NCBI RefSeq assembly: GCF_018977255.1
Contig: NW_024704755.1
Coordinates: 15,500,001-15,564,000 of the forward strand
From: Callorhinchus milii
Taxonomy: Eukaryota
DNA: 64,000 nucleotides
Direction of reading: 5' to 3'
Shown in pieces: positions 1,238-54,500 of this stretch. The notes below the pieces were generated by a model. The model was not told where the DNA came from. It made no database searches and saw only the letters and a list, made by a program, of their open reading frames with translations. The number at the start of each line of letters is the position of its first letter. Position 1 is the first letter of the stretch. The translations under genes were made by a program, and so were the position numbers.

Positions 1238-1549
1238 CTTTGTTGGATTCAGAAAAAGTGTAGACCGCAATGGCTGGAATCCAGAGGGTGACATGAGATA
1301 CCAGACAGGTATAAACAGCCCCATTCTGTGCAGGCTGTGTCTCTTCCATAGAGCTCGAAGCTTTGTAAAGTTCCTTTGAATTCTTTTCTTCAGTGAAATG
1401 TATCCCAGTTTTAAATTCTTTGCCATCTTTATTCCAGGTGAACGTTACATCTCCCGGGTAGAACTCAGCCGTTTCACACACAAGAGTCAGAGACTTTGAT
1501 GGATCTCTTTCAGAATCTCTGGGGAATATCTTCAGTGGGGTTGGGGGGA
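1238..1549 (-). CDS. Gene Z C1-set exon
   Basis: ctgccctacag acceptor, G|gtaatt donor; C1 motifs; ORF 1170..1481. Confidence 0.9.
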
Positions 1550-8236: not shown

Positions 8237-9694
8237 TGTGATCACTTGTTGAGAGTCTCCCTGAACCAGTTTCTGGGTATAACAAATGTTTCCTGATTGA
8301 TTAATATGAAATACCTTGCAATGTCTTATGACTTACTGTATCCGTGGTTCAGCAATGAGTTGGATGCGATTGGAAACAAAAGTGTTTTTCATTAGTAAGT
8401 GGAATCACTCTTCAGATCAGCAGGAAATATGGTTAAATATTAGAAATTGATTTTTATTTTCCGCGTATTGCATTATTTCTTAATTTTCATACAAATCATT
8501 CACTTTTATAATAAGTAACTAGATGATACTAAAGCTGAAATACAGAGCTAAGGAAACAACATTCTCTTCAGTTTAATAATAATAATCGTTGAATTTGATA
8601 GAGCGCCTTATCACGTCATCGAGACTTCTCAAATTTCTTTACAGAATATTTAGTCAACTTTACATTTTGTGAGCAAAAAGTGAATATAATAAAGATTAGT
8701 TTGTTGCAGCATAAAACCAATATTAAAAAAATGTTTACAACAATTTTAGGCTACACCACGAGAATCTGAAATGGAGAAATAACTGAAAGATGATAATAAT
8801 GATTCAACTACTAATTGAATAATTATAATAATAATTAATAATAACCCTTGAATATATAGTAATAGCACTTTACACAAGGCAGTTTGTGCGAAAACTCTTC
8901 ACATGATTTATTGTTTCTGTTGCAGGTGAAGTTGTCACCTTATTTGCAGACAGCGATGTCCCAGGAACAGCTATTAAGTGAATGATCAATTTTCTTTGGG
9001 GAATTGTTGGTCATGATACCCAGGGACTGTTTTCACTTCAGGAGAAATGATATGAGATCGTTAACTTACACCTGAACAGGCAGCACGGACCTCGTTTCAA
9101 CATTTTATCTGAAGGATAAGAACAACAAGTTGGAAATATGCAGCGCCCATCACGCAGGAGAGAGTATTCGAGCATCTGGAACTACAGCTTCGACAATACA
9201 GAATGAACCCTTTAAGGCATTGGAGCATCAGCCGAGAATTGTAGCTCAAAGTCTCGACCTTGGACCTGAACCTACAACTTTCTGATTCAGAGGGACATCA
9301 CCGGAACTGTGTTGAGAGAAGGGAAATATAGAGCGGACAATGACGTTTGTCCCTGTGATGACCGTGAAACCATATTTGAATCATTTTGGTTGTAGATTTG
9401 CCAGCATCGATCAGAAAATAATCTCAATCACTGATTTATGCCTCGGGACGTCCTCCCGATGTAAAAGGCTGTATATAAATTAAGTTTGTTTTTGATATCA
9501 TTGATTTCTTACATTATGTGCGATGGGGGGAAAACAAGGAAAGAAATTGTAACTGTATTGAAATGAATTTGAGCACACTTTCTGCTATCTGAGTTTATAT
9601 CACCTTTAGTAATCACATGTAATATAGAAATGTACAGAAAGGCTCTGACTCTGATGTAACACATGAATGTGGATTATCCCACGGTATTAAAGGA

Positions 9695-10412
9695 ACATGG
9701 CTGCAGAAGCTGTCTGGGAGACAGAAAACAGAGATTGGTGGTGAACAGTTGTTTTTCTGACTGGAGGAAATTGTGCAGTAGTGTCCCCCAGGGGTCAGTA
9801 TTGGGACAACTGTTGTTTCTGATCAATATAAATGACCGGGACCTGCGTATCGGGAGTACAATTTCCAAGTTTGCAGATGATACTAAGCAAGGAAAAGTAG
9901 TCAACAGTGTGGAGGATAGTAGCAGACTGCAAAAGGAGATAGACAGACTGGTAAAATGGGCAGTCATATGGCAGATGAAAATTAATGTGGAGAAATACGA
10001 AATGATGGATTTTGGGAGGAAGATGCGGAGAGGGAATATAAGTCAGATGGTATAATCTTAAAAGGGGTGAGGGATCAGAAATACATGGTCGTTCATATAA
10101 GTAAATCTTTAAAGGTGGCAGGACAGGCAGATTACCTGTGAAAAAAAACATATGGGCTACTAGACTTTATAAACACGGGCAGAGAATACAAAAGTTAGAA
10201 AGTTATGATGAACCTTCATAAAACACTGGTTTGGCCTCAGTTAGCGAACTGTGTTCAGTTCTGTGTACCAATCTTTAGGAAGGATGTCAAGGCTTTGGAG
10301 AAGGTGCAAAGGAGATTCACCAGTATGGTACCAGGAATGAGGGATTTCAGTTATCAGGAGAGAGTAGAGAAGATAGGATTATTCTCCTGAGAGCAGAAAA
10401 GGTTAAGAGGAG
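9695..10412 (+). mobile_element. CR1-clade LINE reverse transcriptase fragment
   Basis: VPQGSVLGQLLFLININD and KFADDTK motifs (ORF 9663..10055); degenerate. Duplicate at about 48845-49395. Confidence 0.85.
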
Positions 10413-12686: not shown

Positions 12687-12698
12687 TTTATTTTTATT
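12687..12698 (-). terminator. Candidate poly(A) signal of gene A (tandem AATAAA)
   Basis: Two AATAAA on the minus strand about 330 nt after the stop; also present at 51085-51096 in the gene D 3'UTR. Confidence 0.35.
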
Positions 12699-13029: not shown

Positions 13030-14692
13030 TTACTTGGATTTCGTTTCCCTGCAGATAGCTGCTGCTGCTCCTCTGTGGTTTCTCACATGGAGCTCTGCAT
13101 ACTCTGTATCCTTAACAGAACTTTTAGGTTTTCCTGGTTTTTTGGACGGATGTAAATCCACAACAGCATACGTCAGATTGTTCCCGGCTGCCTTTTGTTT
13201 GGTCTGAAAACGCAATATTTGAGAAGTTAATTATATTAATTAGTTTTTCCTCAGTCTTTAGAAATCTCCTCGAATATTTGCCAATTATTATTTGCAGAAC
13301 CGCTTGCCCCATAGATGATTTGATAAGGGATTGCTCCTCACAGAACTGAGCTAAACAAAATCCAGTGGCAACAATTCTATTCCTTATTCGATTAGTTGTG
13401 CATTGACAGCAACCGTGGGGTGGGAAAGAAAAGTGAAAATCATCCAAGAAGCAGTTGTTCAAATGTTCTGGAGAGAATTGTTTTTTATTGTTGAACAGTG
13501 GCAGATTGCTGCCATTTCATAGACAAGGTCAGCGACACAGAGAGAAAAGATCACCACATGATTAACCACAGAGATATACAGACTCGTTTACAATAAACAC
13601 TGAAGTGAGATCCACTGTATAAAATGTAGCAAATGCTCAGATATACCTGGGCGTATACAGTCCTCTCGTCTTGTTTTTTAGGTCTGGGGATTTTCTTGCA
13701 ATGATTCAAATCCACTTTGGCATAAGTCACTGAGTCATTCTGTGCTCCCTGCAGTGTCTGTAAGATAGAAAGTGATAGATTGTTGGCTTCACTTGTCTGG
13801 AGATACCTGTATAAGTATTCACCAAATCACCTCGAGAATAAATGTTTTCTCCTACGTTTGAAATACTTAATATATAGCTTCCAAATATTTTACAGGTGAA
13901 AACCAACCTATGTATTAGTTGTTCATTGACATACATAAATATGGGATGTGAATTTCCATATGTAGGTGATATCCCAGTGCCTCATAGGTTGAGACGCACA
14001 ATACCTCGTCTCACACAAGAAAAGTAACTATTTGGCTATACAGTGGTGGATTGTCGCCATCATATCATAGCTCAGGAGAGAGCCAGAAAGTGAAGATTAG
14101 TGTACAAAGAAAGATTAACCACAAAAATGTAGAAACTATCTTGCAGTAATCACCATGTGAATCCCACTCTTTACCGAAGGAAGACAATTCAATTTGATAG
14201 AAAAGATTTCTGTTTGCAATTTATGTTTCTCAGATATACCTGGGCATACACAGTCCTCTCCTCTTGACTTTTAGGTCTTGGACTTTTCTTAGAACTTTTC
14301 AAATTCAATGTAACATATGCCACCGGCTCGTTCTCTGCTCCATGCTTCGTCTATAAAACAAAATGTGATCATAATAAGAAAAATGCATGACATTTATAAT
14401 GCGCCATTCAAGTCGGGATGACATCCTATGGCACTGATAGATTGTTGTCTTCACTGTTCTGGAAATTGTTGTGTATGTACTGATCTGAAAGCCCTTACGA
14501 ATAAATATTTTCACAGCAGTATATAATTTTTACATATAGATGCAGGTAGGGAACATAATTACATTTCTTAATATTGAACAATATGTTTTCATTTCAATCA
14601 TTCTGTTTTGATTTGAAACATCTGCTCAAATGAATTTAATACATCTACCTGTTCTTCGCAATGACCCGATCTTTTCTGGTTTCTGCGTGAGC
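13030..14692 (-). CDS. Gene A cytoplasmic exons (44, 111, 111 and 174 nt)
   Basis: GSRRNQKRSGHCEEQ / [37 protein letters not shown] / [37 protein letters not shown] / TKQKAAGNNLTYAVVDLHPSKKPGKPKSSVKDTEYAELHVRNHRGAAAAICRETKSK*. Confidence 0.8.
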
Positions 14693-17600
14693 CTGAGAAA
14701 GAATTTCAATAAATGAAGCATTCAGTCAATTTCCAAGTGAATCACATGATTTCAAATTCCTAACCCATTCCCTCCACCACACCCCTTCTCTTATTCCTTC
14801 AAACGTATTGCCATCCACTGCTCTACACATTGGATCTGCCGCCGCTCTCTGGAGCACCGTCACTGAGTAATAATAATTATAATCCTTGCATTTCATATAG
14901 CGCTTTTCACGTCTTCTAGATGTCTCACAGCACTTCACAGAATATACTGTAAGGTGAATTGACTGTATATTTTGTGGTCGAAACGCGGCAGCCGATTGCG
15001 CAGCAGTGTCCCACAAACAGTCATGGATTGAAGTGCCCAACGTATTTTTGTTTTTTTCCTTCAGGGATTATTATCAGGCGTGTGAAGTAAGGAAACTTGC
15101 CCAAGGTTTTACCCTGCCAGGAATCGAACCTATGTCTCTTGTTTGCGAGGCATGTGCTCTAACCACTGAGCTACAGGACTCCAATCGGAGTAACTCCGAT
15201 TCCCTCTTTGCAGTGCTTCCTTCAAATTGTTGATGGAAACACTGAGAGCACACATTAATTGCGATATGGACGTATTGTTTAGATGAAAAAACGTTGGTTA
15301 GACCAATTAGAATCCAGGATTGTTTAACCCATGTCGGAAAGATGTCAAGGATTGAATGGGGTGCAAAAGAGATTTACCAGATCATACCAGGAAGGTTGGT
15401 GTGACCTACGTGCAGAGAGCAGAGCAACAGGGAATTTTCTCATTGGATTACAAAAGTTTGAGTGGTGACTCGATGGAGGTTTGGAAAATTATGATGGGTT
15501 TTGATAGCATCAATGGAGAATTTATTTCCATTGGTAGGTGATTTAGTGACAAGAAAGAAATGGCTAAGATAGCTATAAAATGGGAAACAGTGGGGGGTAA
15601 GGAGATTTCTTTTCCACACACAGAGAATTCAGGATATCCTGTTGAGTGTGATGTTGAGGCAAAATGTGCATTCACTTTCAAAAGGCTTCTTGAAGAAATA
15701 ACCTATATTGGGTTAACTGGAAGGGTAATGTAGAAAAACAGGGAAAGTGGGACTGAAAGCATTGCTCTTGAAAGGTTAGCACAGACACTATGGACGGAAT
15801 GTGACTTTATGCAGAGCATAGTTTTGCACTGCAAATTTATATCATTCTATTGAGGTCAAATTGTGCGTCCACTTTCTAGTTTCAGAGGTCTTTCCTGTAC
15901 CTATAACCCAATTCCACCACCAGGCGGAGTGCAGATCCAAGCAGTGTCAATCATATTGGGGCTTCCACAAGACATGAACAGAGCTATATAAATGTGAATT
16001 TATACTGTACCATTAAATGTTTCCCTATTTCCCTATGTTAAGTATTTCCCTTACTCCTTTGTTTCCCAATTTATAAAAGAATATGAAGATCTTTGAACAT
16101 ATTCCAGGAATATCTTGAAATTCTTATGCAATCAATTTATTGTTGAGAAATCATGTTTTACCATATTGGGAACAGAATCCTAAGGGTTTTACCATCGCAT
16201 TTCTGCTGATACCTGATGCTTCTCTCCAATTAAATACAAAATCTGGATTTTGGTATATCGGGCAAAATTTCTAACTTTGTGGACGATACAAAAGGGCAAC
16301 AGTTTGAAGATGATTTTAATTTCATTGAAGAGATGTAACAACGACAACAACAAGAACAAAATTACATTTGTAAAGCGCCATTGATGTGGGGAGGACGTCC
16401 CAACGCACAGAACAGTCAGGGATCAGGACCCGCGTGTGAGGGGTGGAGTTAGGATGAGGGAGGGAGAAGGGGTAGGAGGGCAGAAGGCTCAAAAGTGTAT
16501 TGAGTCAGGCCTTGAAGGAGGCAAGAGAGGGAGCAAGGAGAAGGTATTGCGGGATGGAGTTCCATAGAGTGGGGATAGCGAGTCTGAAAGCCCGGTCTCC
16601 GATGGTAAGGCAGGTTGGGTGGGAGACCTGGAGTAGACCAGAGCCTGCTGAGTGGAGACAGCGAATAGGCTTATAGGGCGTCAGCAGGTCAGAGATGTAG
16701 GAGTGGGCCATGGAGGGCCTTGATAGTAAGGCAGAGGATTTTGAATTCTATCTTCTGGGGCCAGTCAAGAGTGCGGGTGATGGGGTCACAGAACCTGGTG
16801 CAGGAGAGGACATGAGCTACAGAGTTCTGGATGGTCCACTGCTTGTGAGGGGCTGTTGACAACGAGGAACTAGAAGATTGCAGAGAGAAGACAGAGAGAT
16901 GGCAGAGGAATTAAATGCAGGAAACTGGGCATTTGGGGATGTGTTCTAATGGTCTAACAGGATGCTGCGGTTGAAAATGGCCCAAACAGAATCTGCATTT
17001 TCTAGAATAATATATTTTCTAGAACTAATTAATTGCAACAGAAAGCTGAAAAAAACAGGTGAATTCTTTAAGGAGTGGACAGAGATACAATGTGCTGAAT
17101 GGCCTTCTTTGATGTAAATTTCTGTAGTTCAATCACAACAGATTTCTTTGATTCTTTGAGACGTGAAGCTAAATGTATACAGTGCGAGTTTCTGTGAGGA
17201 CATTTGCAATTGTGAATCAATCGCAACCTATTAATCATTTGCACAGCTTTACAGGAAGTCAAGATTCCTCTGGTTGTGACCCGGGATCCTCTAAACTATG
17301 AAATAAACTTCATTTAAATTAAACATTTACAACTAAACTAAATAGAATCGGAATATATCTTACCTTTCCTTTTGTTTAATTGACATAGTTTCCCAATTAT
17401 GATCAAAAGCAGTAGAAATGCCAGCCCTCCCCCTGCACATCCACCGATCAGTTTGTGAAGGTGTTGAGAACCACTCCCTACAAGAACAACATAAATTGAC
17501 AGCGTTTGTGAACCCAGCAATGAGTTACAGCTTGATTATCTACACAGTGCATCAGATCAGAGATGTTTACGAGCATGTTTTAATTGAAAAAAACCTGAAA

Positions 17601-20600
17601 AGTATCCTGTCAGGTCCGTTGCTCTAATGGTCAAAAATCAGCCAGTGGAATGGCCACTGGTGGTGGCCGGGGTATGGGAAGGTGGGTGGGGTGGTGGGGG
17701 TTGAATTCCTCCAGCGAGACAAAGCTCATCCCATTCCAGATACAAATAAGTTCGAGGTGGACTCCATTATGATCAATCATATTTTAATTTGATATATTAT
17801 CGTGTGGAAATGCCTTAAAAGCACATCACACAATGATTCTATTACAGTGTATTAACTGTTGATATATAGGCAAAGGCGACAGCTAATCTGCGCCATGAAT
17901 TGCTAGTTACAGTAATTGCTAGTTAGGTAATTGCTAGTTAGGTAATTGCAGGTTACCTAATGACCAAAATGTGATAACCAATTTGAAGGGAAGTATACAA
18001 TATTCCATACAATAAGAACAAAGTAGGATATCCTGCAATTTAAAATATACTTATGATTCCCTCAGTTATGATTGAGCAGAGTCTAAACTTGATGAGTTGC
18101 CAAATAGAATATAAAAAAGTAAGAGACTAAAGAGAAAATTCAAAGAACGACATGTGAAGTTGAATATTATTTTACAACTATTTCTATGGAGTATTCTTCA
18201 AGTAAACTACATCATTATAATCTTCTGTGTAAATAAATGGAAATTATCTTCGAATAACAATTTAGTTAACAATTGTTTTCAGCAAATTACCTTTGGATTT
18301 AGCAGCATTGTAGACGGCAACCGCTGGAGTCTGGAGGGTGACGTGAGTTACCAGACAGGTATAAACAACACCGCTCTGCACGGTCTTTGGCTCTTCCAAA
18401 GAGCTCGAAACTTTGTAAAGTCCCTTCGAATTATTTTCTTTCATGAAATGTATCCCAGTTTTAACTTCACTGCCGTCTTTATTCCAGGTGAGCGTGACAT
18501 CTCCCGGGTAAAACTCACCCGTTTCACACACAAGAGTCAGAGACTTTGATGGATGTATTTCAGAATCTGTGGGGAATATCTTCAGTGGGGTTGGGGGGAC
18601 TGTAGGGCAGACAGTGGGGCAGAATCACGTTATTTGCTCTGCCACCATTCTGGAGCAACAACAACCTGCATTTATGTAGCACCTTTGCGCAGATAGTGAC
18701 CTTACATACAGATTTAAATGGAGATTTCACTGTGAATAAGGATATAAGCAAAAGCTCCCCATTCACACCAAAATTCATTTTCTTCCACTATTTTTCTTTA
18801 AGCTGTATAAGTTTCCAACTGATTTACAACAGTTACTATAGCTACTTGTGAGCCGTTCCATTCTGTTTGTGGGACATAGCTGCGAGTAAAACAGATTTAT
18901 GAGAGTAATACTTGCATCTGATTTAACATCTTAGACGTTGTTAACGTGTCTCAAATCGCTGAACATAATACAATGAAATTATGTATTAGTGGAACAAATT
19001 CAGTAAAAAGTATGTAAATCAGAAAATTGTAATTGCCTGGACAGTAGTCGCAAGCGATTCTGATGAATAATCCTAATAATAATTATTATCTTCGAGGGAG
19101 CTTCTCATGCCGTGAGGACAGTCTGAAAGCATTTCACGGGATTCACTGTAAATTAGGGCGATTTGCATTTTCGTAGGTCAACACAACAGCCAGTTTTCCA
19201 CACAGCAATGTACCACAAATAGATATGAAGTGAATAATCAAATTTAACTGATGGATTCATGGGCCAGAACATAGCGAGGAAGAAGGTCTCTTCTGTTTTC
19301 GAGTAGTAGCACAGGATATTTAATAACTGTAGGATTCTGCCATTAATGTGTTAAATAATATCTGAAATTATATTTGTGATGTTTATGTATTTGAAACATA
19401 TAATCAATCCCCTATTAGGGAAGCTGTTTTTGCTTCGAAGAAGATTCTTTCTCAAACAGGAGAAACAAAAGACTTTATAAACAACAAACTCTTTTCATTT
19501 TTTATCAGTCATTTTCTCATGGAAAACATGGTCTGCAGCTGGAGAGATCTCTGTTGCATTTGATTACACAAGGAACCATCTTACAAAAGTCAATAGATGA
19601 AAGGTCATCTGATCAACAGTATAATTGGGGATCGATTCGAAAGAAAATTGGAACTTGGAGTCCGAAACATATTCCATCTTCTAATGAAGGAAGAACAAGA
19701 CGACGAGTTAAACAACTCTAAACATACAATAATACTTGGATACTTTTGGGGTGATATCGAACTGGAAACTGTACAACAATACTTGGATACTTTTTGATGG
19801 ACAAATATTTGGATTGAAATGGTCAATAAATTGAAAATTGCTCCTCTATCTCTCCCGCAGCATTTGGTTGGGTCAACCTATATCTTTATCAGCTGCATTA
19901 TACGAGGAAACATAAGCATAATTGGATGTATTTTTAATTACTTATTAACATTATTAATCTGAATTAATAAAGATTGAATAATTGTACAACATTTGTGTCA
20001 GTCCTTACTGCACCGCAGTATTGAATTTAAAGGAACCCTCACATATCCACCTGAACAACTAGAAGGGACTCGGTTTAACTTCTCATCCAAATAGCGGGAA
20101 GACACATATCGATCCTCAAGCACTGCATTGAATTGTCAGCCGCCGTGGGACAATTTCTGTAACTTTGATCACGATACAAACAAACACCAGATAGAGTAAA
20201 GTTCTAGTTACGGTGATGTGGAGGGATATCAAGGTCTGAAACATTGCTTAACGCAATTATTCAGCAACTCAACTTCCCACTTTGTTGTATTTGATAAATT
20301 GCCGCTTCAGATCATTACAATAGCGAAGGGGCAAAACTTTGGTTGAATAGTATTCTGTTGTTCAATGTTTTTCATATTGATATCAAACCTGTCCTGTGTG
20401 CTGTTCAATCATAAATTTGTATGAGAGTAGAGAATTAGACAAATAATTTACTTATATCGTTTTCACAATATGGCAATACTCACCTTTCAGCATTCTCTGT
20501 TACTATGGTATTCACACTTACCATGTACAGTTAAACGTGATCCAGTTCCTTTTCCTGCTATTTTTTCCTGACGCTTCACTGCACAAAGATAGACTCCCGA

Positions 20601-21075
20601 GTCTTGAAAATTCACGTTTAGGAGGTGGAATGATTTGGACTCAAATATTTTCCTGTTGTCAGGTTTTGTATTCAGGAATCCACTCTCTCCTTGTTTCCAC
20701 CAGTAAAGTTCTGTATTTGAATTGTGTTGATTTCTGGCAGTCTCACAGGAGAATGTACCATTTTCACCTTGGATTACTGTGAGTTCTGCAGGATATTGGA
20801 TCACTTTCACTGATGCATCACCAGCAACTGTCAGGAAATGAATTAACCAATAATTACTGATTATAGAGAGGAATAAAAGCGACAAAACAAACGGAGAGAG
20901 GGAGAGAAAGGTGGGAGATAGTTAGAGGAAAAGAAAGACAAACGTATTAACAATACACATTTTGAAACTCTTCACTTCTGTCGTTTTGTATTTAGACTGA
21001 GCTTTAGTACAATTCCATACCTGTGGCAATAATCCCCATTAGAGAAAGATAGGGAATAGCATCACTCGCCATCAT
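13030..21075 (-). CDS. Gene A: complete VJ-C1-TM receptor with a six-tyrosine ITIM tail, 407 aa
   Basis: Exons 21075-21021, 20827-20522, 18599-18291, 17477-17364, 14692-14649, 14350-14240, 13757-13647, 13203-13030 sum to 1224 nt, open, with consistent phases. ITIMs VAYVTL, VTYAKV, LTYAVV, plus TVYAQ twice and TEYAEL. Confidence 0.88.
14871..15183 (-). mobile_element. tRNA(Ala)-derived SINE
   Basis: Same family, full head and tail. Confidence 0.8.
16340..16850 (-). mobile_element. Older L2 3' fragment
   Basis: [22 protein letters not shown] motifs (ORF 16505..16711). Paralogue at 56521-57030. Confidence 0.75.
17364..17477 (-). CDS. Gene A stalk/transmembrane exon
   Basis: 114 nt; [20 protein letters not shown] followed by basic KLCQLNKRK; cttgtag acceptor, gtaag donor. 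Confidence 0.85.
17898..17957. repeat. Short tandem repeat, unit about 15 nt (AATTGCTAGTTAGGT), about 4 copies
   Basis: Read directly in the gene A C1-TM intron; a single copy occurs at the paralogous site near 58495. Confidence 0.75.
18291..18599 (-). CDS. Gene A C1-set exon
   Basis: 309 nt; CETGEFYPGDVTLTWNKDG..YTCLVTH; ORF 18262..18531. Confidence 0.9.
20522..20827 (-). CDS. Gene A V(J) exon
   Basis: 306 nt, same splice sites and motifs as Z; ORF 20487..20885. Confidence 0.9.
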
Positions 21076-27010: not shown

Positions 27011-28809
27011 CATTGGACCCAGCTCAGCCAAAATGAGACAATGTTTGTTTCCTCCCTCCAAGGACAGTCACTGGTTAGCAATTAGACATCCATCGAGCAC
27101 AGGATTTAGTCTGCGCTGGATGGATAATAGATACCAGAAAATATCTACAAATCTCACAGTGAGCAGCACAACTAAGCATTAAATGTGTGAGAGCGCTGCC
27201 CGCACCCTCCTGTCCTTCTTGGGACAGCTTTGTATCGACTGAGCGATGATTGAAGCATTGAGTGAATCAACAAACAAAACCCTGAAGATGTGCTTTTTTA
27301 AAAGGTACAAACGCAGCCACACACCGTCTGCTTTGAGACATGGCGATTATTGGATAAGCACAATATCAAATTTGTGAATTATAAATAGATAGGAGGGCAA
27401 AGTAAACCCACTCTACAGTTCAGATCTCACCTTTAATGAATCAGAACAAAGGCAAAGATGTGAGGAATGATATATCTGTTTGTTGTTACATAAACAATGC
27501 AAAATTGTGCACAATATCTACAACCACTTCGCTACTCTTTGAGAAGCAATTAATAGAAAAGTCGCTAATACATAGAACATGTTAAAATCAACTGGGCTCT
27601 ATTTTTAATCGGATTGAACAAATCTCTTGCAATGGAATTATGTATTGACATTTTCAAATACAGCAGAACAATTAGGGTTTGATCACTTAGTTGTTTCACG
27701 CTAGGTTTTTTTTTGCAGTTCAATAATATTTAAACAGTTCAACGCCCAGGTATCAACTTTTTCACTGCGTTGTATGAATTGCACCATATTTTGTGGACCT
27801 GCTTTTAAAGTTGCCCATAGCAACTGTTTTGTTTGTCTGAAGCGACAGAGTGACCAGAGGAGATTGATTCATGCAATTTATGTTTTTTTTTGAAAGAACA
27901 TGTTACAGAAAACAGAAATTCCTAACTTTTATATTCAGGTTTTAGTTTCATAGCAGTTAAACCTCTTAGTGAGGTGTACCTTAAAAAACGTTATCAGATT
28001 AACACAAATAATACTTGTTTAAAATTAAGTATGGTTAAAAAGATATAGTAAGCAATATTTTCAAAGAATTTTCCTCAAGGCAAATTGTGTAACAAACTGA
28101 TCAATGCAGTTATGGTTGAAACAGGTCTAAACAGCATTACAGCACAAGACTAATGTGGCACATCATTCAGTACATTGAAAACTACATCCAATATACAACA
28201 ATATCCATTTTGGTGACTATTGCATTACTTAGATCTTGGTTCCCTGCAGATAGTTGCTGCTGCTCCTCTGTGGTCTCTCACATGGAGCTCCACATGCACT
28301 GTATCCTTAACATAACTTTTAGGTTTTCCTGATTTTTTTGGAGGGATGTAAATCCAGAACAGCACAGATTAGATTGTTCTCGCTGCCCTTTGCTTGGTCT
28401 GAAAAGGCAATGTTTGAGAGTTTAATAGTATAAATTCATTTTTCCTCAATCTTCAGTAATCTCCTTGAATATTTGCCAATTATTATTTGCAGCACCATTT
28501 GCCCAATAGCTCCTTTGATGAAGCCACTGCTCCTCACGGAACTGAGCTGAACAGAATTCAGTAGCCACGATTCTTTGCGTATTGGTTTAGTTGCACATCA
28601 AGAGCAAACATGGGCTTGGAAAGAAAAGTGAAAATGAACCAGGGAAGCAGTTGTTCAAATGATTTGGACACAAGTGTTTTTCTTTTTCTAACTGGTGAAG
28701 GATTGCTGGCATCATTTGATGGCCTAGGTCAGTGACAGAGAGAGAAAAAAANTCATAGGAGAAAGAAAGGTTAACAACAGAAATATACAAACTAATTTAT
28801 AATAAAGTG

Positions 28810-35250: not shown

Positions 35251-36718
35251 CAGTTACAGGACTTAACAGTTTATCCTGCAAAACACTTTGAGACATTGTG
35301 ACTACGTGATAAGGCACAATATCAAATTCATGGTTATTAATAGATATGACCTTGAAGTAAAACCACAGCACAGCTGTGAGCCAGCACAAAGGCGTAGAGC
35401 TCCAGAATGATATGTCTCATGTCGTTAGAATGCAAATACACTGCTCTATTTTTAGCTTGAGTGAGCGAATCTCTTGTAATGCAACTATTTATCTACACTT
35501 CTAAATACAGAAGAACCATTGAGGTTTTAACTCTTAGTTAATTGTTATTTAATATTATTAGTTGTTTCAAGTTAGGTATATTTTTAGCAGTTACGTGAAC
35601 AGCTCATGTCCACAACTTTTTTGCTGCGTTGGACAAATTGCACTTTCTTTTATTGAACAGCTTTTAAGCTAGCCTGCATCATTTCATTAATGCTGAAGAG
35701 ACAGAGTCACTAAAGGAGATTGCTTCAAGCAATTCGTGTTTTTATCGATTAAAAGGATGGTTGAACATGTTAAACAATAGTTCCTAAGCTTCATCCACTG
35801 GTTTTCGTTTGTGGCAATTAAAATGCTATTTTTTAATCAAATAATTTAGTAGTGACCTTTACAAATCTTATCAGATTAAAAATACTGTTGGTAATTATGT
35901 ATGGATTATAGATATAGCCAGCAATATTTTACAAGAAATTTCCTAAAGATATATGATGTAATAATAAATGCAGTTATAGTTGAACCAGATGCAAAAAGAA
36001 AAGCAGCACAGGACTCAGAAGCTAATTATTCGGTATTGTGGAAAACTACATCCAATATACACCAATATCAGTTTCTGACACTGTTGCATTACATGGATCT
36101 TGGTTCCCTGCAGATAGCTGCTGCTGCTCCTCCATAGTTTCTCGCATGTCGTTCTGCACACTCTGTATCCTTAACGGTACTTTTAGGTTTTCCGCTTTTT
36201 TTTGGAAGAATGTAAATCCAGAACAGCACACGTCAGATTGTTCTCGGCTGTACTTTGCTTGGTCTGAAAAGGCAATGTTTGAGAATTTAATTACATTGGT
36301 TCATTTTTGCTCAGTCTAGAAATCTCCTCAAATATTTGCCAGTTATTATTGCAGCACTGCTTGACCCACAGCTCATTTGATAAAGGCCCTGCCCCTCACA
36401 GAACTAAGCTGAACAGAATCTAGCGGCCACAATTCTTTCCTTGTTGGATTCGTTGCGCAAAGACAACAACGGTGGGCTGGGAAAGAAAAGTGAAAATAAC
36501 CAGGGAAGCAGTTGTTCAAATGTTCTGGAGATAAATATTTTTCTTTTGCTAAATGTTGGCAGATTGCTGGCACTATTTCATAGCCCAGGTAGAGAGAGAA
36601 ACGATCAGAGGAGATAGAGGGGATAACAACAGAAATAGACAAACTAGTGTATAATAAACAATGAAGTGATTTCCACTATATATAATTTAGCGAGAAAAAT
36701 TCTCAGATATACCTGGGG

Positions 36719-39700
36719 CTACAAAGTCCTCTCATCTTGCGTTTTGGATCTTGGAGTTTTCTTGCAACGATTCAAATCCACTTTGGCATAAATCACAGAC
36801 CCATTCTCTGCTCCCTGCAGTGTCTGTAAAACAGAATGTGATAGATTGTTGGCTTCACTGGTCTGGAGATTCCTGTATAAGTATTTATCACAATGCCCTC
36901 AAGAATAAATATTTTCAACTAAGTTTAAAATATTTAAATATAGCGTCCAAATATTTTAGCAGTGGAGATCAACCAGTGTAGCAGTTTGTTCATTGACCTA
37001 TAGAAATGTGGGGTGGGTATTTCCATATATAGCTGATGTCCCAGTGCCTCATAGATTCACACACAATAACTAGTCTTATACAAGAAGAATAACTATTTGG
37101 TTATACAGTAGCTTGGAGATTGTCTCCCTCCATAGTCTGCAGATTATCCAGAACTCTGCAGCTCGTGTCCTCTACTGTACCAGGCTCTGTGAATCATCTC
37201 CATCCTCGCCCGACCACACTGACTTCCCATCACACAAATGATACAGTTCAAGATCCTGGTCCTCAGCTTCTAAGGCCTCCATTGCCTGCTCCCCACCCAC
37301 CTCTGTGACCTCCTAAACCCCTACGAACCTGCCCACTTGCTCCGCTCAGAAGGCTCTGCCTGCTTAATGTCCCACACGTCATCCGCCCCACCATTGGTGG
37401 ATGAGCGTTCAGTCACTCTGCCCCACCTTCTGGAGCTCCATTCGAAAGTATCTCCACCTTGCCTCTTCCCTTGCCTCCTTGAAGACCCATCTCAAGAACC
37501 TCCTTTTGGACTGTGCTTTGAATCACTCCCCTCCAGCCTCCCCGATCCCGATCCCCAGATCGGGCCCAAAATATTAACTGTCCAGTGTCTTGTGAAGTCC
37601 TCCCGATGTAAAATGCATTAGAAGACCATAAGACGTAGGAACAAAGGTAATTTTGTTGTTGTTGTTGTTCATTGACCTACAGCAATGTGGGGTGTGCATT
37701 TCCATATATAGATAATGTCCCAGTGCCTCATAGATTGACACACACAATATCTAGTCTTACACAAGTAGAATAACTATTTGGCTATACAGTGGCGGATTGT
37801 CACCATCATATCACAGCCACAGAGTGAAGATTAGAGGGCAAAGGAAGACTAACCACAAAAACTATCTTCCAGTAAACACTGAAGTGAATCCCACTCTTTA
37901 CTGAACCAAGAAAATTCAACTGGTTAGAAAAGGTTTCTGTTTGATTTTGTGTTTCTTAGCCATACCTGAGCGTATACAGTCCTCTCCTCTTGTCTTTCAG
38001 ATCTTGGAGTTTTGTTGCAAGTAGCCAAATTCAATGTGACATAAGCCACCGGCTCATTCTCTGCTCTGTGCTTTGTCTATGTGATCACAACAAGAAAAAT
38101 ATATTACATTTCCATAGCATATTTCAAGTCACGATGATGTCCTAAGGCGTTGATGGATTGTTCTGAAAATTGTTGTGTATATACTGATCAGAAAGCCCTC
38201 GAGAATAAATATCTTCCCCGAAGTTTATAATATTTAACATTCAGCTCTGTCACCAATTACATGAAACTCGGCGTCTCATATTTCAGCAGTACATTGAGGC
38301 CATGTAGATGTACGTAGAGAATACATTTAAAATCTTTTTATTTCTTAATGATGAATAATATCTTTCCATTACCTGAATTCCGTTTGAGACAATTGCTGAA
38401 ATGAATTTAATAAATGTACCTGTTCTTCGCAATGCCCCCTTCTGTTCTGGTTTCTGCGTGAGCCTTGGAAAGAAATTCAATAAATGAAGTATTCATTCAA
38501 TTTCTACGTAAATATTTTCAAGCATATTTTGGATAGACCGAATAAAAAGCGATTCAGAGTCCATGAACTGCCAGATCTTGGTTCTAAAAAGGTAGTTTTC
38601 TTCCACCACAAACCTGCTCATCTTTATTGACCGTTAATGCATTAAAACCTGAATTAGAGTCACACAAATCACATGATTTGAACTTCTGAAACATCCGCCT
38701 CTCTTCCATTATTCCTTCAAATGGTTTATCATCCACTGCCCCATGCTCTGAAACTGCCCCTGCTCTCTGGAACACCAGCCCTGAGTGCCTCCGATACCCT
38801 CTTTCTCGCGCCTTCAAATCGTTGATGGAATAAGCGAGAAAATAGATAAATTGTGATATGGAATATAAAACCAGAGAGGTAATGTCAACAAGAAAGATCA
38901 TTATTTAGAACACAATTAGAATATTATGTCCAGGATTGTTTTCCTCACTTACGAAAGACGTCAAGGAATGAATGTGGTGCAAAAGAGATTAATCGGATTA
39001 TATCGGGGGAGGTTGGTGTGACCTGTGAGCAGAGACTGGAGGATCTGGGACTTTCCTCTTTGGAACAAAGAACTTTGAGTGACGACCTGCTAGAGATCGA
39101 TTTCTAAGTTTGCTGATGAGACAAAAGTGCAACAGTGAAGAGGATTGTAATTTTATTGAAGAGATATAAGACCCAGCAGATTGCTAAAGATGGCAGTTGA
39201 AACTGGGCATTTTGGGATGTGTAACCAGGTGGGTTATGTAACATCGTGCTGCTGGTGAAGGTAGCCCAGGCGGGATCTGCATTTTCTAAAATAATATATT
39301 TTCTAAAATTAATTAATTGTAACGGTAAGTGGAATAAACAGGTGAATGAAATGTAAATTAAGACCTGTAGGAGCAGGCTTAGACCATTCGGCCCCTCAAG
39401 CCTGACCCACCATTTAATAAGATCGTGGCTGATCTTCTAACCTAATTCCATTTAGCCGCCCTATCCCCATATCACTTAATCCCTCTATCCTTCAGAAATA
39501 TATTAACCTCAGTCTTGAATATGTTCAAGGACTGAGCATCCACAGCCTTCTGGGGTAGAGAATTCCGCAAATTCACTACCCTCTGAGTGAAGAAATGTTT
39601 CCTCAACTCAGTTCGAAAAGGCTGACCCTTAATCTTGAGATAACCCCATCTGCCACCTACTTGCCCACTCAGCTAGCCTGTCTTTTTCCCTCTGCATTCG

Positions 39701-50000: not shown

Positions 50001-51591
50001 TACTTCTCTTAATCTCTCAGCACTGTCTACTCTCTTCCTGTCTCACGTATTTCAAGGAGGCTTTCTCGACGAGGCGAGACCAAATTGATCTACTCCCTTG
50101 ATCATGCTCCATCCCCGTAATATCACCTTCTCATCATGTGCCATTTCTTTGCCCCAAGCTTGATTTGCATGTCTAACCCTTGGTGCCTTTCGGAAGCAGT
50201 TCTATTATTTGGTCTGTTTGCTCTGAACCTCTGAGGGATGGGGAACCAAAGCAGTGTGGCAAGGGAGGCGGTGATTGGGTCACAGAACCAGGTGCAGGAG
50301 AAAACACGAGCTGCAGAGTTCTGGATGATCTGGAGCTTGTGGAGGAAAGGGATGGGAAGGCCAACAAGCAGAGGATTGTTGTAATTGTACATAGATGTGA
50401 TGAAAGTGAGAATGAGGGTGTCGATAGCCTGAGGGCTGAGGCAGTGGTGAAACCAGGTGACAATGCGGAGGTGGGGGAAGGCAGATCGAGTCATGGCATG
50501 GATGTATGGGAGAAAGGACAGTTGAGGTCAAACAAGATGCCAAGGTTCCTGACTGGCTCAGTGAGGTGGACAGTGCTTCCTTAGATGGTGATGCTGCCAG
50601 CGTTTGAAGTGCGGAGTCGCATATAGGAGCCAATCAGGAGGGCCTCAGTGTTGTTGATATTCAACTGTAGGAAGTTAGCTCTCATCCAGGCCTTGTCCTG
50701 CTTTGAATCGATTCGGACATTCATTTTCCAAACAAGTCACATTCGACCCAGCTCAGCCAAAATGAGACCATGTTTGCTTCCTCCCTCAACTGGGCTCTAT
50801 TTTTAATCTGAGTGAGCGAATCTCTTGCAATGGTATTATTTGTTGACATACTCAAATACAACAGAACAATTGGGCCTTTATCACTTAGTTGTTTCATGTT
50901 AGGCCTTTTTTTTTGCCATTCAACAACATTTCATTAGTTCAATGCACACACATTTTTCTCTGCATTATATGAAATACGTGATATTTTAATTGACCTGCTT
51001 TTCAGTTAGCCCATACCAACTGTGTTTCTTACTCATGCTGAAAAGACAGAGTGACCAGAAGAGACTGGTTCATGCGATTTATGTTTTATTTTTATTGAAA
51101 GGCTGATTGAATGCATTACACAAAACCGAAGTTCCTAACTTACATTCAAGTTTTAGTTTCGGAGCAATTAAAGGGCAATTCAAATTGCCCATTGAGACAT
51201 ACAACTAATTGGTTATCTTTCAAGATGTTATCAGATTAACACAAACAATGCCTTTTTGCAATTTTAAGTATGGTGATGAAGATATAGTAAGCAATATTTT
51301 CCAATAATTTTCCTAAAGACTGATCACGTAACAACCTAATAAATGCAGTTATGGTTGAAAAAGGTGCAAGGAACATTGCAGCACAAGATTAATGCACATC
51401 ATTCAGTAAATTGGAAAATTACATCTAATATACACCAATATTAGTTTCTGAGCCTGCTGCTTTACTTGGCTCTTGGTTCCCTGCAGATAGCTGCTCCTAC
51501 GTGGTTTCTCACAGGAAGCTCTGCATTCGCTGTATCCTTAACAGAAATACTGGGATTTCCTGTGCTTTTTGTAGGATGTAAATCCAAAAGC

Positions 51592-54500
51592 TCACGTCAG
51601 ATTGTTCACGGCTACCCTTTGCTTGGTCTGAAAAAGCAATGTTTGAGAAAGTAATTACATTAATTTGTTTTTCCTGACGTTTTAGAAATCTCCTCGAATA
51701 TTTGCAAATTATTATTTACAGCACCACTTGGCTCATTAGGTAAAGGCTCTACTCCTCACAGAACGGAGCTGAACAGAATCCAGGAGCCACAATTCTTTTC
51801 CTTATTGGATTAGTTGTGCATCGACAGCAATGTAGGCTGGAAAAGAAAAGTGAAGACCAGGGTAGCAGTTGTTCAAATGATTTGGAGATTAATGGGTCTT
51901 TTTTTTTGCTAAACAGTGGCGGATTGCTGCCATCATTTCATAGTCCAAGTCAGCGACAGAGAGAGAAAAGATCAGACGAGAAAGAAAGATTAACCACAGA
52001 AATATACAAACTAGTTTATAAACAATGAACAACAACAACAACAACAAGATTCCATTTATAAAGCGCCTTTCACGTCAGGAGGACGTCCCAAGGCGCTGCA
52101 CAGTTGGGTCATGACCCGAGCAGGGGGGAAATGGACAGGGTGAGGGGAGGGAAGGGAGGGAGCGAGGAGGGGGGAAATGGTCAGGATGAGGGGAGGGAAG
52201 GGAGGGAGCGAGGAGCGGGGAAATGGTCAGGGTGAGGGGAGGGAAGGGAGGGAGCGAGGAGGGGGAAGAGAGTCGAGAGGGGAGCTGAAGGCATGAAGTG
52301 AGTTCCACTACATAGAATGTAGGAAAAAAAATTCTCAGATATACCTGGGTATACACAGTGTTTTCGTCTTGTTTTTTAGGTCTTGGAGTTTTCTTGCAAC
52401 GATTCAAATCCATTTTGGCATAAGTCACCGACTCTTTCTCTGCTCCCTGCAGCGTCTGTAAGACAGACAGTGATAGATTGTTGGCTTCACTGATTTGGAG
52501 ATTCCTCTATTAGTACTGATCAAAATGCTCTTGTGAATCAATATTTTATAATAATAATAATAATCCTTGCATTTGATATAGTGCCTTTCACGTCGGGAGG
52601 ACATCCCAAAGCGCTTCACCTGAATTGAAAATATTTAAAATATAACTTCCAAATATTTTACAAGTCAAAATCATCCTAATTAGCTTTCAGAAGAAAAATT
52701 CCTATTTGACTATACAGTGGCTGATTGTCACCATAATATCATAGAATAAGATAGCGCAAGAGTGTGAAGATGAAGGATAAAGAAAAATTAACCAAAAAAA
52801 TGTGCAAACTATCTTACAGTAAATATTGAAGTGAGTCCCATTCTTTAAAGAAGTAAGAACATTCAATTGGATAGGAAAAGTTGCTGTTTCCATTTTGTGT
52901 TTCTCAGATATACCTGGGCATACACAGTCCTCTCCTCTTGTCTTTTAGGTCTTGGAGTTTTCTTGGAACTGGTTAAATTCAATGTAACATAAGCCACCGG
53001 CTCGTTCTCTTTTCCGTGCTTCGTCTATAAAGCAGAATGTGATGACAACAAGAAAAAACATGATATTTATATTGCACCATTCAAGTCGGGATGACGTCCT
53101 ATGGCACTGATGGATTGTTGTCTTCACTGGTCTGAAAATTGTTGGGGAAGTACGAATCAGAAAGCCCTTGAGAATAATTATATTCGGAGCAGTTTATAAT
53201 TTTTAACAAATAGATGCATGTAGGGAACATATTTAAAAGGTTATTATTTCTTAATAACAACAACAACAAGATTACAGTTGTATGGAGCCTTTCATGTCGG
53301 GAGGACTTCCCAAGGCGATGGACAGTGTACAGCAATTCAGACCCGAGCTGGAGTCAGGAGGGGGAAGGGAGGGGAAGAGGGATGGCCGATGGCACGGTCG
53401 AAGAGGAGAGACTTGAGGCGGCACTTGAAGGAGGCTAAGGAGGGAGCGAGACGGAGTGATTGGGGGATGGAATTCCAGAGGTTGGGAGTAGAGTGGCTGA
53501 AGGCTCTCCTGCCAATGGTGGGGCGGGTGGGTCGGAGCACATGGAGCAGGCCAGAGCCGGCTGAGCGGAGGGAGCGGGTAGGTTGGTAGGGGGGTAGGAG
53601 GTTGCAGAAGTCGGGTGACCAATAACTTTCCATTTGAAGAATTCTGTTTTCAGCTGAAGCATCTGCTGAAATTAATTGAATAAATTTACCTGTTCTTCAC
53701 AATGGTTCAATCTGTTCTGGTTTCTGTGTGAGCCTTAGAAAGAAATTCAATAAATTAAGTATTCACTCAATTTCAAAGTAAATCACATGATTTCAACTTC
53801 TTAACACATTTGCCCACCCCCTTCTCTTATTCCTTCAAATGTATTGCCATCCATTGCTCCACACTCTGGAGCTACAGCTGCCTCTGGAACACCATCACTA
53901 AGTAACTCTGATTCCCTTCTTCACCGCCCCCTTTCTTGTTGATGGAAAAAACAAGATAATAGATTCATTGTGATATGGAATATAAAACCAAAGAGGTATT
54001 AGTAAGATGTAAAAAACGTTGGTTGGACCAATTAGATGATTGTGTCCAAGATTGTTTACCCCACGTAGGAAAGATGTCAATGAATGAATGGGGTGCAAAA
54101 GAGATTTAGCACATGATAATAACAACAATAATAATAATAATCCTTGCATTTGATATAGCACTTTTCACGTCTTCGAGATGTCTCAAAGCGTTTCACAGAA
54201 TGGATTGTAAAGTGAATTGACTGTATATTTGTAGGTGAAATGCAGAAGCCAATTGTGCACAGCAGTGTTCCACAAACAGTTGTGGTTTGAAGTGACCAAT
54301 TTATTATTGTTTGATTTTCTTAGGGATTATTATCAGGCGTGTGGAGTAAGGAAACTTGCCCAAGGTTTCACCCTGCTGGGAGTCAAACCCAGGTTTCTCG
54401 TTTGCAAAGCGAGTACTCTAACCGCTGAGCTATATGATACCAGGCAAGGCTGGCGTGACCTATGAGCAGAGACTGGAGCAACAGAGATTTTTCTCCATGG

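Follow-up and report, generated by a model that had tools for sequence, protein, structure and literature searches.

Gene 2 and its eight exons

The window studied here is a 64,000-nucleotide stretch of DNA from Callorhinchus milii (elephant shark). Gene 2, which occupies positions 13030-21075 on the minus strand, belongs with similar genes of this species to a tandem cluster located on scaffold MU249845.1 at about 15.35-15.83 Mb. As shown in Table 1, its eight exons are arranged in the order leader, V, C1, TM, short exon, A, B and C, and they give a single open frame of 407 aa with ag/gt at all splice sites and compatible phases. The product is a type I membrane receptor with a basic tail of 155 residues. 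Exon 8 is translated into module C, TKQKAAGNNLTYAVVDLHPSKKPGKPKSSVKDTEYAE, which is followed by a 20-residue C-terminal extension, LHVRNHRGAAAAICRETKSK, and the stop. The end of the V domain fits GxG[T/S]xLxV, a germline-joined J-like motif. Only one C1 exon lies between V and TM, as is also the case in single V-C1 RefSeq paralogues such as P0001-P0003, and the TM helix contains no Lys, Arg or Asp, and so no charged residue for pairing with ITAM adaptors.

Table 1. Features of gene 2 and of related tails in the 64-kb window
Feature	Position	Strand	Description
Exon 1	21021..21075	-	start codon; leader peptide MMASDAIPYLSLMGIIAT; phase 1 at its end; donor gtatgg
Exon 2	20522..20827	-	V-set Ig domain, J-like end GKGTGSRLTVH; phase 1-1; Pfam V-set E 5.6e-8
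Exon 3	18291..18599	-	C1-set Ig domain; phase 1-1; Pfam C1-set E 6.7e-14
Exon 4	17364..17477	-	stalk, uncharged TM helix, stop-transfer KLCQLNKRK; from hydrophobicity scan and splice sites
Exon 5	14649..14692	-	44-nt juxtamembrane cytoplasmic exon GSRRNQKRSGHCEEQ; shifts phase 1 to 0
Exon 6 = module A	14240..14350	-	111 nt, phase 0-0; acceptor ttatag, donor gtatat; VAYVTL ... TVYAQ
Exon 7 = module B	13647..13757	-	111 nt, phase 0-0; acceptor ttacag, donor gtatat; VTYAKV ... TVYAQ
Exon 8 = module C	13030..13203	-	174 nt including TAA; acceptor tttcag; LTYAVV ... TEYAEL
Candidate poly(A) signal	12687..12698	-	two overlapping AATAAA, 331-337 nt past stop codon; pattern only
Intron segment upstream of exon A	14435..14539	-	homologue at 13773-13877, upstream of exon B; repeat family D2
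Intron segment downstream of exon A	14040..14173	-	homologue at 13495-13621, downstream of exon B; repeat family D4
Orphan C-type terminal exon	28225..28398	-	decayed: stop codon; His in place of second Tyr
Gene 3 tail	36089..38076	-	paralogous A-B-C tail
Gene 3 module A	37966-38076	-	intact
Gene 3 module B	36713-36823	-	in-frame stop
Gene 3 module C	36089-36263	-	frameshift; Cys in place of both Tyr
Gene 4 (= RefSeq P0001) tail	51462..53024	-	paralogous A-B-C tail
Gene 4 module A	52914-53024	-	intact
Gene 4 module B	52345-52455	-	intact
Gene 4 module C	51462-51627	-	truncated after 11 codons

The gene 2 model is co-linear with the RefSeq paralogue P0001, with which it has an identical exon chain and 85% identity, and homologues of exon 5 were found in genes 3 and 4 and in P0001, P0002 and P0017. 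The UniProt entry A0A4W3H6B2 (P0007) matches exon 2 at 100%, and its model has the leader and V exons in common with gene 2. The best protein matches of gene 2 are the C. milii 'signal-regulatory protein beta-1-like' and 'tyrosine-protein phosphatase non-receptor type substrate 1-like' proteins; the names given to its relatives vary by source (SIRP-like, NCR3LG1-like, tapasin-related, CD276, Ig-lambda-like). The exact 407-aa product and its six splice/start variants (seven sequences) were absent from a 15-billion-protein collection, which thus gave no annotation or transcript support for the gene 2 copy. Furthermore, a tail-only homology search for transcript-derived A-B-C fragments retrieved six known relatives only, none of them from gene 2.

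The three modules of the cytoplasmic tail

Each module is a unit of approximately 37 residues composed of an ITIM-like tyrosine, a Lys/Pro-rich spacer and a second tyrosine. The tyrosines are located at positions 12 and 35 of modules A, B and C, a spacing of 23, and Tyr35 of A is 14 residues from Tyr12 of B. The first motifs, VAYVTL (A), VTYAKV (B) and LTYAVV (C), all fit the ITIM consensus [SIVL]xYxx[IVL]; the second motifs, TVYAQ in A and B and TEYAE in C, fit TxYAx, and the TEYAEL of module C is ITSM-like. Modules A and B are identical at 82 of 111 nucleotides (74%) and 21 of 37 residues, A and C at 59/111 and 14/37, and B and C at 57/111 and 16/37. When the whole window was searched in six frames, the cross-matches had E-values of 3e-11 (A-B), 9e-5 (A-C) and 1e-5 (B-C), and the similarity of the modules is therefore far above chance.

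A previous sequence-only reading of this locus had described two 111-nt phase 0-0 exons as homologous to each other and to the terminal exon over its first 111 nt, and the identities and six-frame E-values confirm it. The tyrosine layout, ITIM assignments and 23-residue spacing given there were reproduced on the exon translations. The complete open gene model of a type I Ig-superfamily receptor likewise agrees with its view that the cytoplasmic tail is a modular, exon-encoded and amplified cassette. Modules A, B and C of gene 2 are under purifying selection: dN/dS was 0.29 for A+B between gene 2 and gene 4, 0.36 for A+B between gene 2 and the locus L003, and 0.41 for module C against that of P0002.

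Origin of module B and number of modules in relatives

The introns flanking exons A and B are homologous on both sides. The upstream pair gave a local alignment score of 78 compared to 28.7 +/- 4.6 for shuffles (z = 10.8) and a blastn match of 75% over 79 nt, and the downstream pair gave a score of 71 compared to 28.6 +/- 3.8 (z = 11.0). Local alignment of the introns of C with those of A or B detected no homology (z = -0.8 to 1.7), and DNA-level duplication is thus demonstrable for A and B only. The comparison of exons and flanking introns proposed in the sequence-only reading therefore gives intron homology for A and B and none for C. TRF at a maximum period of 500 reported no tandem array across 13030-14350, since the copies are too diverged and the period is limited to that maximum.

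In the module tree, the B modules form a clade with 100/98 support inside the first-module (A-type) group, which is itself weakly separated (63/85), and module C of gene 2 groups with the last modules of the P0002 and P0004 tails. Exon A was later copied in tandem, together with approximately 100-130 nt of intron on each side, to give module B. The "triplication" suggested earlier is thus correct insofar as there are three homologous modules; it was not a single event, the tail being composed of an older A/C pair and a younger B derived from A.

The usual tail, found in most full-length relatives in C. milii, Heptranchias and Heterodontus, contains four tyrosines at a spacing of 23/14/23. This two-module tail consists of an A-type internal exon and a C-type terminal exon and is common to the Holocephali and Elasmobranchii relatives examined. 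The modules are exons at other loci too (L002, L003 and L005 in C. milii, L001 and L004 in Heptranchias), the internal ones being 102-117 nt long. In L002, a two-module paralogue, the intron between A and C contained no trace of a B exon at the protein level. Tails of three or four modules with intact tyrosines are present in P0012 and P0033 (C. milii), P0020 and P0034 (Heterodontus) and P0036 (Scyliorhinus torazame), and the Heterodontus three-module proteins are P0019 and P0020. The count of modules in relatives, which had been put forward as a check, thus gives two as the usual number, three in gene 2, and three or four elsewhere. Extra modules were gained several times within the family. 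The old A-type/C-type pair is present in chimaera and shark relatives alike, and two modules are taken here as the ancestral state.

The decay of module C is not confined to the copies listed in Table 1. A stop is present at codon 3 of module C in L003/P0003, and Tyr is replaced by Cys in that of P0006. Module C is truncated or decayed in every other A-B-C copy checked, and only gene 2 among them has six tyrosines. This decay of C in the other copies suggests that selection favours about two modules, not three. Pseudo-V exons and a half-V duplicate were also observed inside the window.

Comparison of the tail with SIRP-alpha

When a profile of the two-module tail was searched against 1.84 billion protein representatives, 44 matches were obtained in all, most of them unnamed. 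Camel SIRP-alpha was among the 44 (E 1.7e-4), and the matched stretch contains its four tail tyrosines. Alignment of the shark tail profile with SIRP-alpha by hhalign gave a probability of 90% and an E-value of 1.4e-6, with four of four tyrosines aligned in order. Moreover, module C is 38% identical (E 0.002) to the published human SIRP-alpha bisphosphoryl peptide, the first unit, which, once phosphorylated, activates SHP2 (PMC5589908). The match to SIRP-alpha, although significant, is modest and depends on short motifs within a basic tail of low complexity, and convergence is therefore possible.

The two receptors are also alike in architecture. SIRP, which has been counted among the joined-VJ genes (PMC11599192), resembles gene 2 in that SIRP-alpha is non-rearranging and has an N-terminal V domain with a J-like end, a C1-set, an uncharged TM and a basic tail. 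The SIRP-alpha tail is likewise built of two-tyrosine units, ITYADL..(24)..TEYASI and LTYADL..SEYASV, and its pattern of four tyrosines in two pairs is matched by the tail of gene 2, which has one extra pair. RefSeq names the gene 2 paralogues SIRP-beta-1-like or SHPS-1-like.

There are differences, however. Gene 2 has one C1 domain whereas SIRP has two membrane-proximal C1-set domains; its tail has three units (six tyrosines) instead of two; and its within-unit spacing is fixed at 23, compared to 24 in the first SIRP-alpha unit. Where SIRP-alpha has TEYASI, modules A and B have TVYAQT as their second motif, two residues including the aliphatic +3 being absent. SIRP was not among the listed solved-structure matches of the gene 2 V and C1 domains; among those listed, V was closest to Robo and TCR-beta chains, and C1 to Ig lambda/mu constant domains and UrIg2. 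For the tail, SIRP-alpha (SHPS-1, PTPNS1) is a closer model than PECAM-1.

Comparison with PECAM-1, UrIg and other receptors

The sequence-only reading had compared the tyrosine pair with that of PECAM-1, whose ITIM tyrosines are given as Y663 and Y686 in PMC12356826. The 23-residue spacing is correct, but as the nearest known tail PECAM-1 gives way to SIRP-alpha, which is closer by profile. PECAM-1 was not identified among the named matches of the tail-profile search, in which most of the 44 matches are unnamed. In PECAM-1, a single tyrosine pair is split over exons 13 and 14, whereas in gene 2 the pair lies within one exon and is repeated. The PECAM-1 ectodomain has six Ig domains, unlike that of gene 2 with one V-set and one C1-set domain. 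The tail of PECAM-1 is encoded by several short exons that are alternatively spliced, and its exon 13 and exon 14 tyrosines have been reported to dock SHP-2 together (PMC2132561).

The tail-profile matches include teleost proteins that carry similar units in three or four copies, and some of the teleost matches have other architectures (Oreochromis LOC102081169, Channa). LILRB, KIR, CD22/Siglecs and the teleost NITR and LITR are type I receptors in fast-evolving tandem clusters, with several ITIM/ITSM tyrosines, and these clusters also contain pseudogenes and short-tailed relatives. Their ectodomains differ from that of gene 2, being of C2- or I-type or V only, and their tails are without the strict 37-residue, exon-sized two-tyrosine unit at 23/14 spacing.

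The non-rearranging VJ-C1 molecules UrIg and UrIg2 of cartilaginous fish resemble gene 2 in having a germline-joined V with a J-like end followed by C1 (PMC12227049, PMC10751288). UrIg is a nonrearranging shark antibody according to the title of Flajnik et al. 2023, as cited in PMC10751288. The solved architecture of UrIg2, V-C1-C2-C3, is unlike that of gene 2. The identification of gene 2 as UrIg was rejected because of the different architecture. No ITIM is mentioned for UrIg or UrIg2 in PMC12227049 and PMC10751288, and the papers covered by our literature search contain no account of a comparable SIRP-like or ITIM-bearing family in sharks.

Proposed function and alternative explanations

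We consider it probable that gene 2 is an intact 8-exon receptor with a SIRP-alpha-type tail, in which B arose by tandem exon duplication and the units engage SHP-1/SHP-2 to dampen signalling. The ancestral tail is taken to have had two units, an internal A-type exon and a C-type terminal exon. A stretch of approximately 450-600 bp carrying exon A and approximately 100-130 nt of intron per side was then duplicated in tandem in one C. milii subfamily, and since exon A is in phase 0-0, a third unit, B, was inserted in frame. Upon ligand engagement, Src-family kinases would phosphorylate the tail tyrosines; a doubly phosphorylated unit would act as the SIRP-alpha bisphosphoryl motif does and engage the tandem SH2 domains of SHP-1/SHP-2, whose autoinhibition would be released, and cell signalling would be damped. 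The exon structure, the history of duplication, the purifying selection and the likeness to SIRP-alpha are shown by the sequence analysis; we infer the phosphorylation, the SHP-1/2 docking and the inhibitory output. The third unit might hold an additional phosphatase, for the up to three sites per chain suggested in the sequence-only reading, or might add avidity or redundancy alone. The C-SH2 domain of SHP2 has a strong preference for Ile/Val/Leu at +3 (PMC10065799). The +3 residue of the second motif is Thr in A and B (TVYAQT), and module C (TEYAEL) alone is a full C-SH2-type match; with Thr at that position, A and B may be weaker than C or differently specific.

The frequent decay of module C bears on a different reading, which we regard as possible though on balance unlikely: the three-module state could be a functionless transient of birth-and-death turnover, in which the A exon duplicates and a module, usually C, then goes, so that the third unit of gene 2 would be redundant or being lost. 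That C is truncated or decayed in gene 4/P0001, L003/P0003, gene 3, P0006 and the orphan exon at 28225-28398, and that most relatives have exactly two modules, would be expected from such turnover. However, no module of gene 2 has lost a tyrosine, a splice site or the frame, the dN/dS values of A, B and C are all <0.45, and tails of three or four modules with intact tyrosines occur in other lineages (P0012, P0033, P0020, P0034, P0036). Silencing is a related matter. Gene 2 could have been recently shut down in a pseudogene-rich cluster, its open frame awaiting decay; the absence of the exact product from public protein sets, where the sole UniProt model (P0007) has the leader and V exons in common with it, and the broken relatives in the window (gene 3, pseudo-V exons, the half-V duplicate and the orphan C exon) fit with this. 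We find it improbable in view of the eight open exons with canonical splice sites, the dN/dS well below 1 against paralogues, and the AATAAA signals 331-337 nt past the stop.

Two further alternatives concern the form and the partners of the tail. Exon B, and possibly A too, could be an alternatively spliced cassette giving two- and three-module isoforms instead of a fixed six-tyrosine tail, since A and B are each 111 nt in phase 0-0 and the frame is kept if either is skipped. Both have the identical non-consensus donor CAG/gtatat without G at +5, and the tail exons of PECAM-1 are alternatively spliced in a comparable manner (PMC2132561). Nevertheless, A and B are both included in the RefSeq paralogue models P0001 and P0003, and the gene 2 skip variants are all absent from the 15-billion-protein collection, so we rate cassette splicing as rather unlikely. 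It is quite doubtful, in our view, that the tyrosines chiefly serve partners other than SHP-1/2, such as AP-2 in endocytosis or Csk, SHIP or a SAP-type adaptor, with the likeness to SIRP-alpha being convergent. The ITIM-like YVTL, YAKV and YAVV are compatible with the YxxPhi sorting motif, TVYAQT is nearly invariant family-wide (TVY and Q are invariant) yet is without an aliphatic +3, and similar repeated units are found in the teleost proteins of other architecture (Oreochromis LOC102081169, Channa). By contrast, the profile alignment spans the four SIRP-alpha tyrosines in order and at similar spacing, canonical ITIMs are found as the first motif of every module, and the C-SH2-type pattern is matched in full by TEYAEL.

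Implications

A multi-ITIM receptor in a fast-evolving cluster is, by itself, ordinary immunogenetics, and the three-module tail of gene 2 is a modest but real departure from a familiar design. Should the tail function as proposed, the SIRP-alpha-style paired-tyrosine phosphatase-docking unit is old, being present in chimaeras and sharks alike, and is a single symmetric exon that can be gained or lost without damage to the frame. A more far-reaching view, to which we give little credence, is that the cartilaginous-fish VJ-C1 receptors are deep relatives (co-orthologues) of SIRP, that the SIRP-alpha-type, SHP-activating two-tyrosine unit predates the jawed-vertebrate radiation as a self-contained phase 0-0 exon and that its copy number is an evolvable dial. 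If that were true, module number (2, 3 or 4, changed independently per lineage) would tune the strength of the inhibitory signal, and gene 2 would be a six-tyrosine setting holding up to three phosphatases. Gene 2 is also a further candidate among the few germline-joined V-C1 receptors that have been considered in relation to how antigen receptors originated. The tails of two, three and four units constitute a natural series in which the number and spacing of units can be tested against inhibitory strength.

The three-module tail of gene 2

Gene 2, the second member of a tandem array of receptor genes on the minus strand, has canonical splice sites at all eight exons. Its domain exons are in phase 1-1, as is typical of Ig-superfamily genes, a 44-nt cytoplasmic exon returns the phase to 0, and exons A and B are 0-0. 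The product is a type I protein of 407 residues with V-set and C1-set domains (Pfam), a J-like C-terminal end of the V domain (GKGTGSRLTVH), an uncharged TM helix, and a 155-residue tail whose net charge is +19. Downstream of the stop, at a distance of 331-337 nt, are AATAAA hexamers. The exact product was absent from a 15-billion-protein collection, both as the full sequence and as six variants in splicing or start site (seven forms in all); the only entry found was a UniProt model with the leader and V exons in common. Directly upstream, at 22300-22702 (minus), lies a partial copy that covers the leader exon (98%) and, at 94%, the first half of the V exon; its similarity to gene 2 is lost beyond 155 nt.

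Exons of gene 2 and members of the receptor array (window positions)
Feature	Positions	Strand	Remarks
Gene 1	1241-4673	minus	leader, V, C1; tail beyond window
Gene 2		minus	focal gene
Leader exon	21021-21075	minus	gene 2, upstream of modules
V exon	20522-20827	minus	gene 2, upstream of modules
C1 exon	18291-18599	minus	gene 2, upstream of modules
TM exon	17364-17477	minus	gene 2, upstream of modules
44-nt cytoplasmic exon	14649-14692	minus	gene 2, upstream of modules
Module A exon	14240-14350	minus	111 nt, flanked by ag and gt
Module B exon	13647-13757	minus	111 nt, flanked by ag and gt
Module C exon	13030-13203	minus	acceptor tttcag; 174 nt up to TAA stop
Orphan C-type terminal exon	28225-28398	minus	decayed; part of remnant
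Remnant V	30914-31219	minus	looks intact
Remnant leader	31412-31465	minus	looks intact
Gene 3	36089-43580	minus	array member
Gene 4	51462-61560	minus	RefSeq P0001

The three-module tail is a real feature. The sequence-only reading had described three homologous 111-nt modules, and the exon coordinates, tyrosine positions, motifs and a search of all six frames across the window showed this description to be accurate throughout. Each module has tyrosines at positions 12 and 35; the first motifs, VAYVTL (A), VTYAKV (B) and LTYAVV (C), each match the ITIM consensus, with TVYAQ, TVYAQ and TEYAE as the respective second motifs. The translation of exon C is TKQKAAGNNLTYAVVDLHPSKKPGKPKSSVKDTEYAELHVRNHRGAAAAICRETKSK. 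Nucleotide identity is 74% between A and B and 51-53% between C and either of them, and the modules matched one another with E values of 3e-11, 9e-5 and 1e-5. None of the module exons of the other fetched loci was present in the window, with L002, a C. milii locus, additionally compared directly by blastn.

Comparison with SIRP-alpha and PECAM-1

A profile built from ten two-module tails, searched against 1.84 billion representative proteins (E <= 0.001), gave only 44 matches. Where the source organism of a match was looked up and was not a cartilaginous fish, the match was either a teleost protein with repeats of similar units or a camel protein, 'tyrosine-protein phosphatase non-receptor type substrate 1', that is, SIRP-alpha (E 1.7e-4). 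In the hhalign comparison with camel SIRP-alpha (90% probability, E 1.4e-6), the tyrosines of ITYADL, TEYASI, LTYADL and SEYASV all aligned in order with those of the shark profile. The bisphosphoryl motif DITYADLNLPKGKKPAPQAAEPNNHTEYASIQTS, which forms the first unit of the SIRP-alpha tail, activates SHP2 in its phosphorylated form (PMC5589908) and shares 38% identity with module C. PECAM-1 has its two tail tyrosines in different exons, 13 and 14 (PMC2132561), whereas both tyrosines of a gene 2 module lie in one exon. SIRP-alpha is therefore a closer model for the tail than PECAM-1, to which the sequence-only reading likened its 23-residue tyrosine spacing. The family is already termed SIRP-like in public annotation. 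SIRP has two C1 domains and the gene 2 product one, the ectodomain showed no specific similarity to SIRP among the solved-structure matches listed, and gene 2 is only a candidate member of the SIRP family proper.

Origin of the third module

When the exons were compared together with their flanking introns, as the sequence-only reading had proposed, intron 14435-14539 beside A matched 13773-13877 beside B (z = 10.8) and 14040-14173 beside A matched 13495-13621 beside B (z = 11.0), but unit C showed no intron similarity to A or B. Since the homology lies on both exon sides, B arose by tandem segmental duplication of the A exon with its flanks. In the module tree, where the first- and second-module groups are weakly separated (63/85), module C groups with the last modules of P0002 and P0004, both two-module paralogues (99/91), and within the first-module group a separate clade (100/98) unites the B modules of gene 2, P0001 and P0003. 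Genes 2, 3 and 4 share the A-B-C arrangement with L003, another C. milii locus; therefore, the A-to-B duplication is older than these gene duplications. Synonymous divergence, from few sites, agrees with this order (dS 0.64 for A versus B, ~0.3 between genes). Taken together, intron homology, module clustering, A-B-C distribution and dS indicate that the tail is an old A/C pair with a younger A-derived insert. The modules were thus amplified, but not by the one triplication of the sequence-only reading.

Module number across the family

The main value of the tail is evolutionary: a SIRP-alpha-type unit is packaged as a movable exon in cartilaginous fish, and its copy number has changed repeatedly. 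Most family members have two modules, and some lineages have three or four. Tyrosine spacing is 23/14/23 across the family with very little variation (within modules mostly 22-23, range 20-23), and a tail alignment of ten sequences shows no variation at TVY, Q or the four tyrosines. Internal modules occupy one exon each, of 102-117 nt, at all loci examined (L001-L005). The extra modules have separate origins in several members: a C-type duplicate in P0012, P0033 and P0074 of C. milii, a common three-module tail, with modules pairing one to one, in P0019/P0020 of Heterodontus and P0036 of S. torazame, a four-module tail in P0034 of Heterodontus, and a truncated third module in P0045 of Heptranchias. 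The gene 2 tail belongs to a known kind of signalling tail and is a lineage-specific variant of it, longer by a single exon-sized unit.

Elsewhere among the A-B-C copies checked, module C is truncated or decayed, with a stop after 11 codons in P0001 and at codon 3 in L003, and with loss of tyrosines in gene 3, in P0006 and in the orphan exon. Among the A-B-C copies seen, six intact tyrosines occur in gene 2 alone. Its dN/dS against paralogues (0.29-0.36 for A+B, 0.41 for C) argues that its modules have been under constraint.

Some family members outside the window (P0014 and P0027) have short tails without tyrosine modules, and P0014 has an Arg within its hydrophobic segment. By analogy with SIRP-beta, this hints that short-tailed members may be activating partners of inhibitory forms (paired receptors).

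Proposed working of the tail

By analogy, the gene 2 product most likely works as an inhibitory receptor. From homology, Src-family kinases would phosphorylate the tail tyrosines, and each phosphorylated unit would bind the tandem SH2 domains of SHP-1/SHP-2. The C-SH2 domain of SHP2 favours Thr/Val/Ile at -2 and Ala/Ser/Thr at +1, and its preference for Ile/Val/Leu at +3 is strong (PMC10065799). The second motif of A and B with its following residue is TVYAQT, whose +3 Thr is encoded by the codon that opens the following exon; Thr occurs at every module junction. TVYAQT satisfies the -2 and +1 preferences but fails at +3; TEYAEL of module C satisfies all three. At this motif the hhalign alignment of the shark profile has a two-residue gap relative to TEYASI of SIRP-alpha. 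Since TVYAQT misses the aliphatic +3 choice, the binding of three phosphatases per chain, predicted from the motifs, is the least secure part of this reading. The third unit may instead give higher avidity or be redundant, the symmetric module exons may be alternatively spliced, and TVYAQT may serve a different partner.

The introns after A and B begin with gtatat, and read-through into their starts (14225-14239 and 13638-13646, respectively) would turn the second motif into TVYAQV, a canonical TxYxxV ITSM; past exon A it would meet a stop 16 codons on. Exactly such read-through is used in P0005, a UniProt model of a paralogue. Intron retention after the module exons would shorten the tail and leave it with a motif that looks stronger.

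The gene cluster and its surroundings

The closest protein matches were C. milii proteins, which marks the window as elephant-shark DNA; these proteins are named 'signal-regulatory protein beta-1-like' and 'tyrosine-protein phosphatase non-receptor type substrate 1-like' by their sources; remoter relatives were named NCR3LG1-like, tapasin-related, CD276 and Ig-lambda-like. Relatives were found in Heptranchias perlo, Heterodontus francisci, Scyliorhinus canicula, S. torazame and Mobula birostris. The same scaffold, MU249845.1, carries the paralogues P0002, P0003 and P0074 at ~15.35, 15.48 and 15.81 Mb. A C1 exon was looked for in the gene remnant (28225-31465, minus) and none was found. A LINE-like reverse-transcriptase ORF (28858-29325) and the single N of the window (28752) lie in the same stretch.

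The V exons of genes 1-4 (4120-4425, 20522-20827, 43027-43332 and 61014-61319, minus) share 96-98% identity, but the C1, TM and tail exons only 82-91%. This is the opposite of the usual pattern in diversifying immune receptors and suggests gene conversion or strong V-domain constraint. Upstream of genes 1 and 3 are diverged second V-type exons (~75% identity; 7584-7888 and 46379-46682, minus), accompanied by leader-like sequences (8182-8236 and 46972-47026, minus). They have defective splice sites and a frameshift in the J-like end, and one copy (FTYKV) has lost the first Ig cysteine; they are probably pseudo-exons copied together with the gene unit. ARAGORN detected tRNA-Ala-like sequences at equivalent sites of genes 2 and 4, within the intron between the TM and cy1 exons (15109-15180 and 54368-54439, minus), probably heads of a tRNA-derived SINE duplicated with the gene unit. 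Long stop-free frames at 9660-10052, 26321-27067, 40131-40850 and 55473-56552 resemble reverse-transcriptase/LINE fragments and, with related repeats, occupy much of the intergenic space between the receptor genes.
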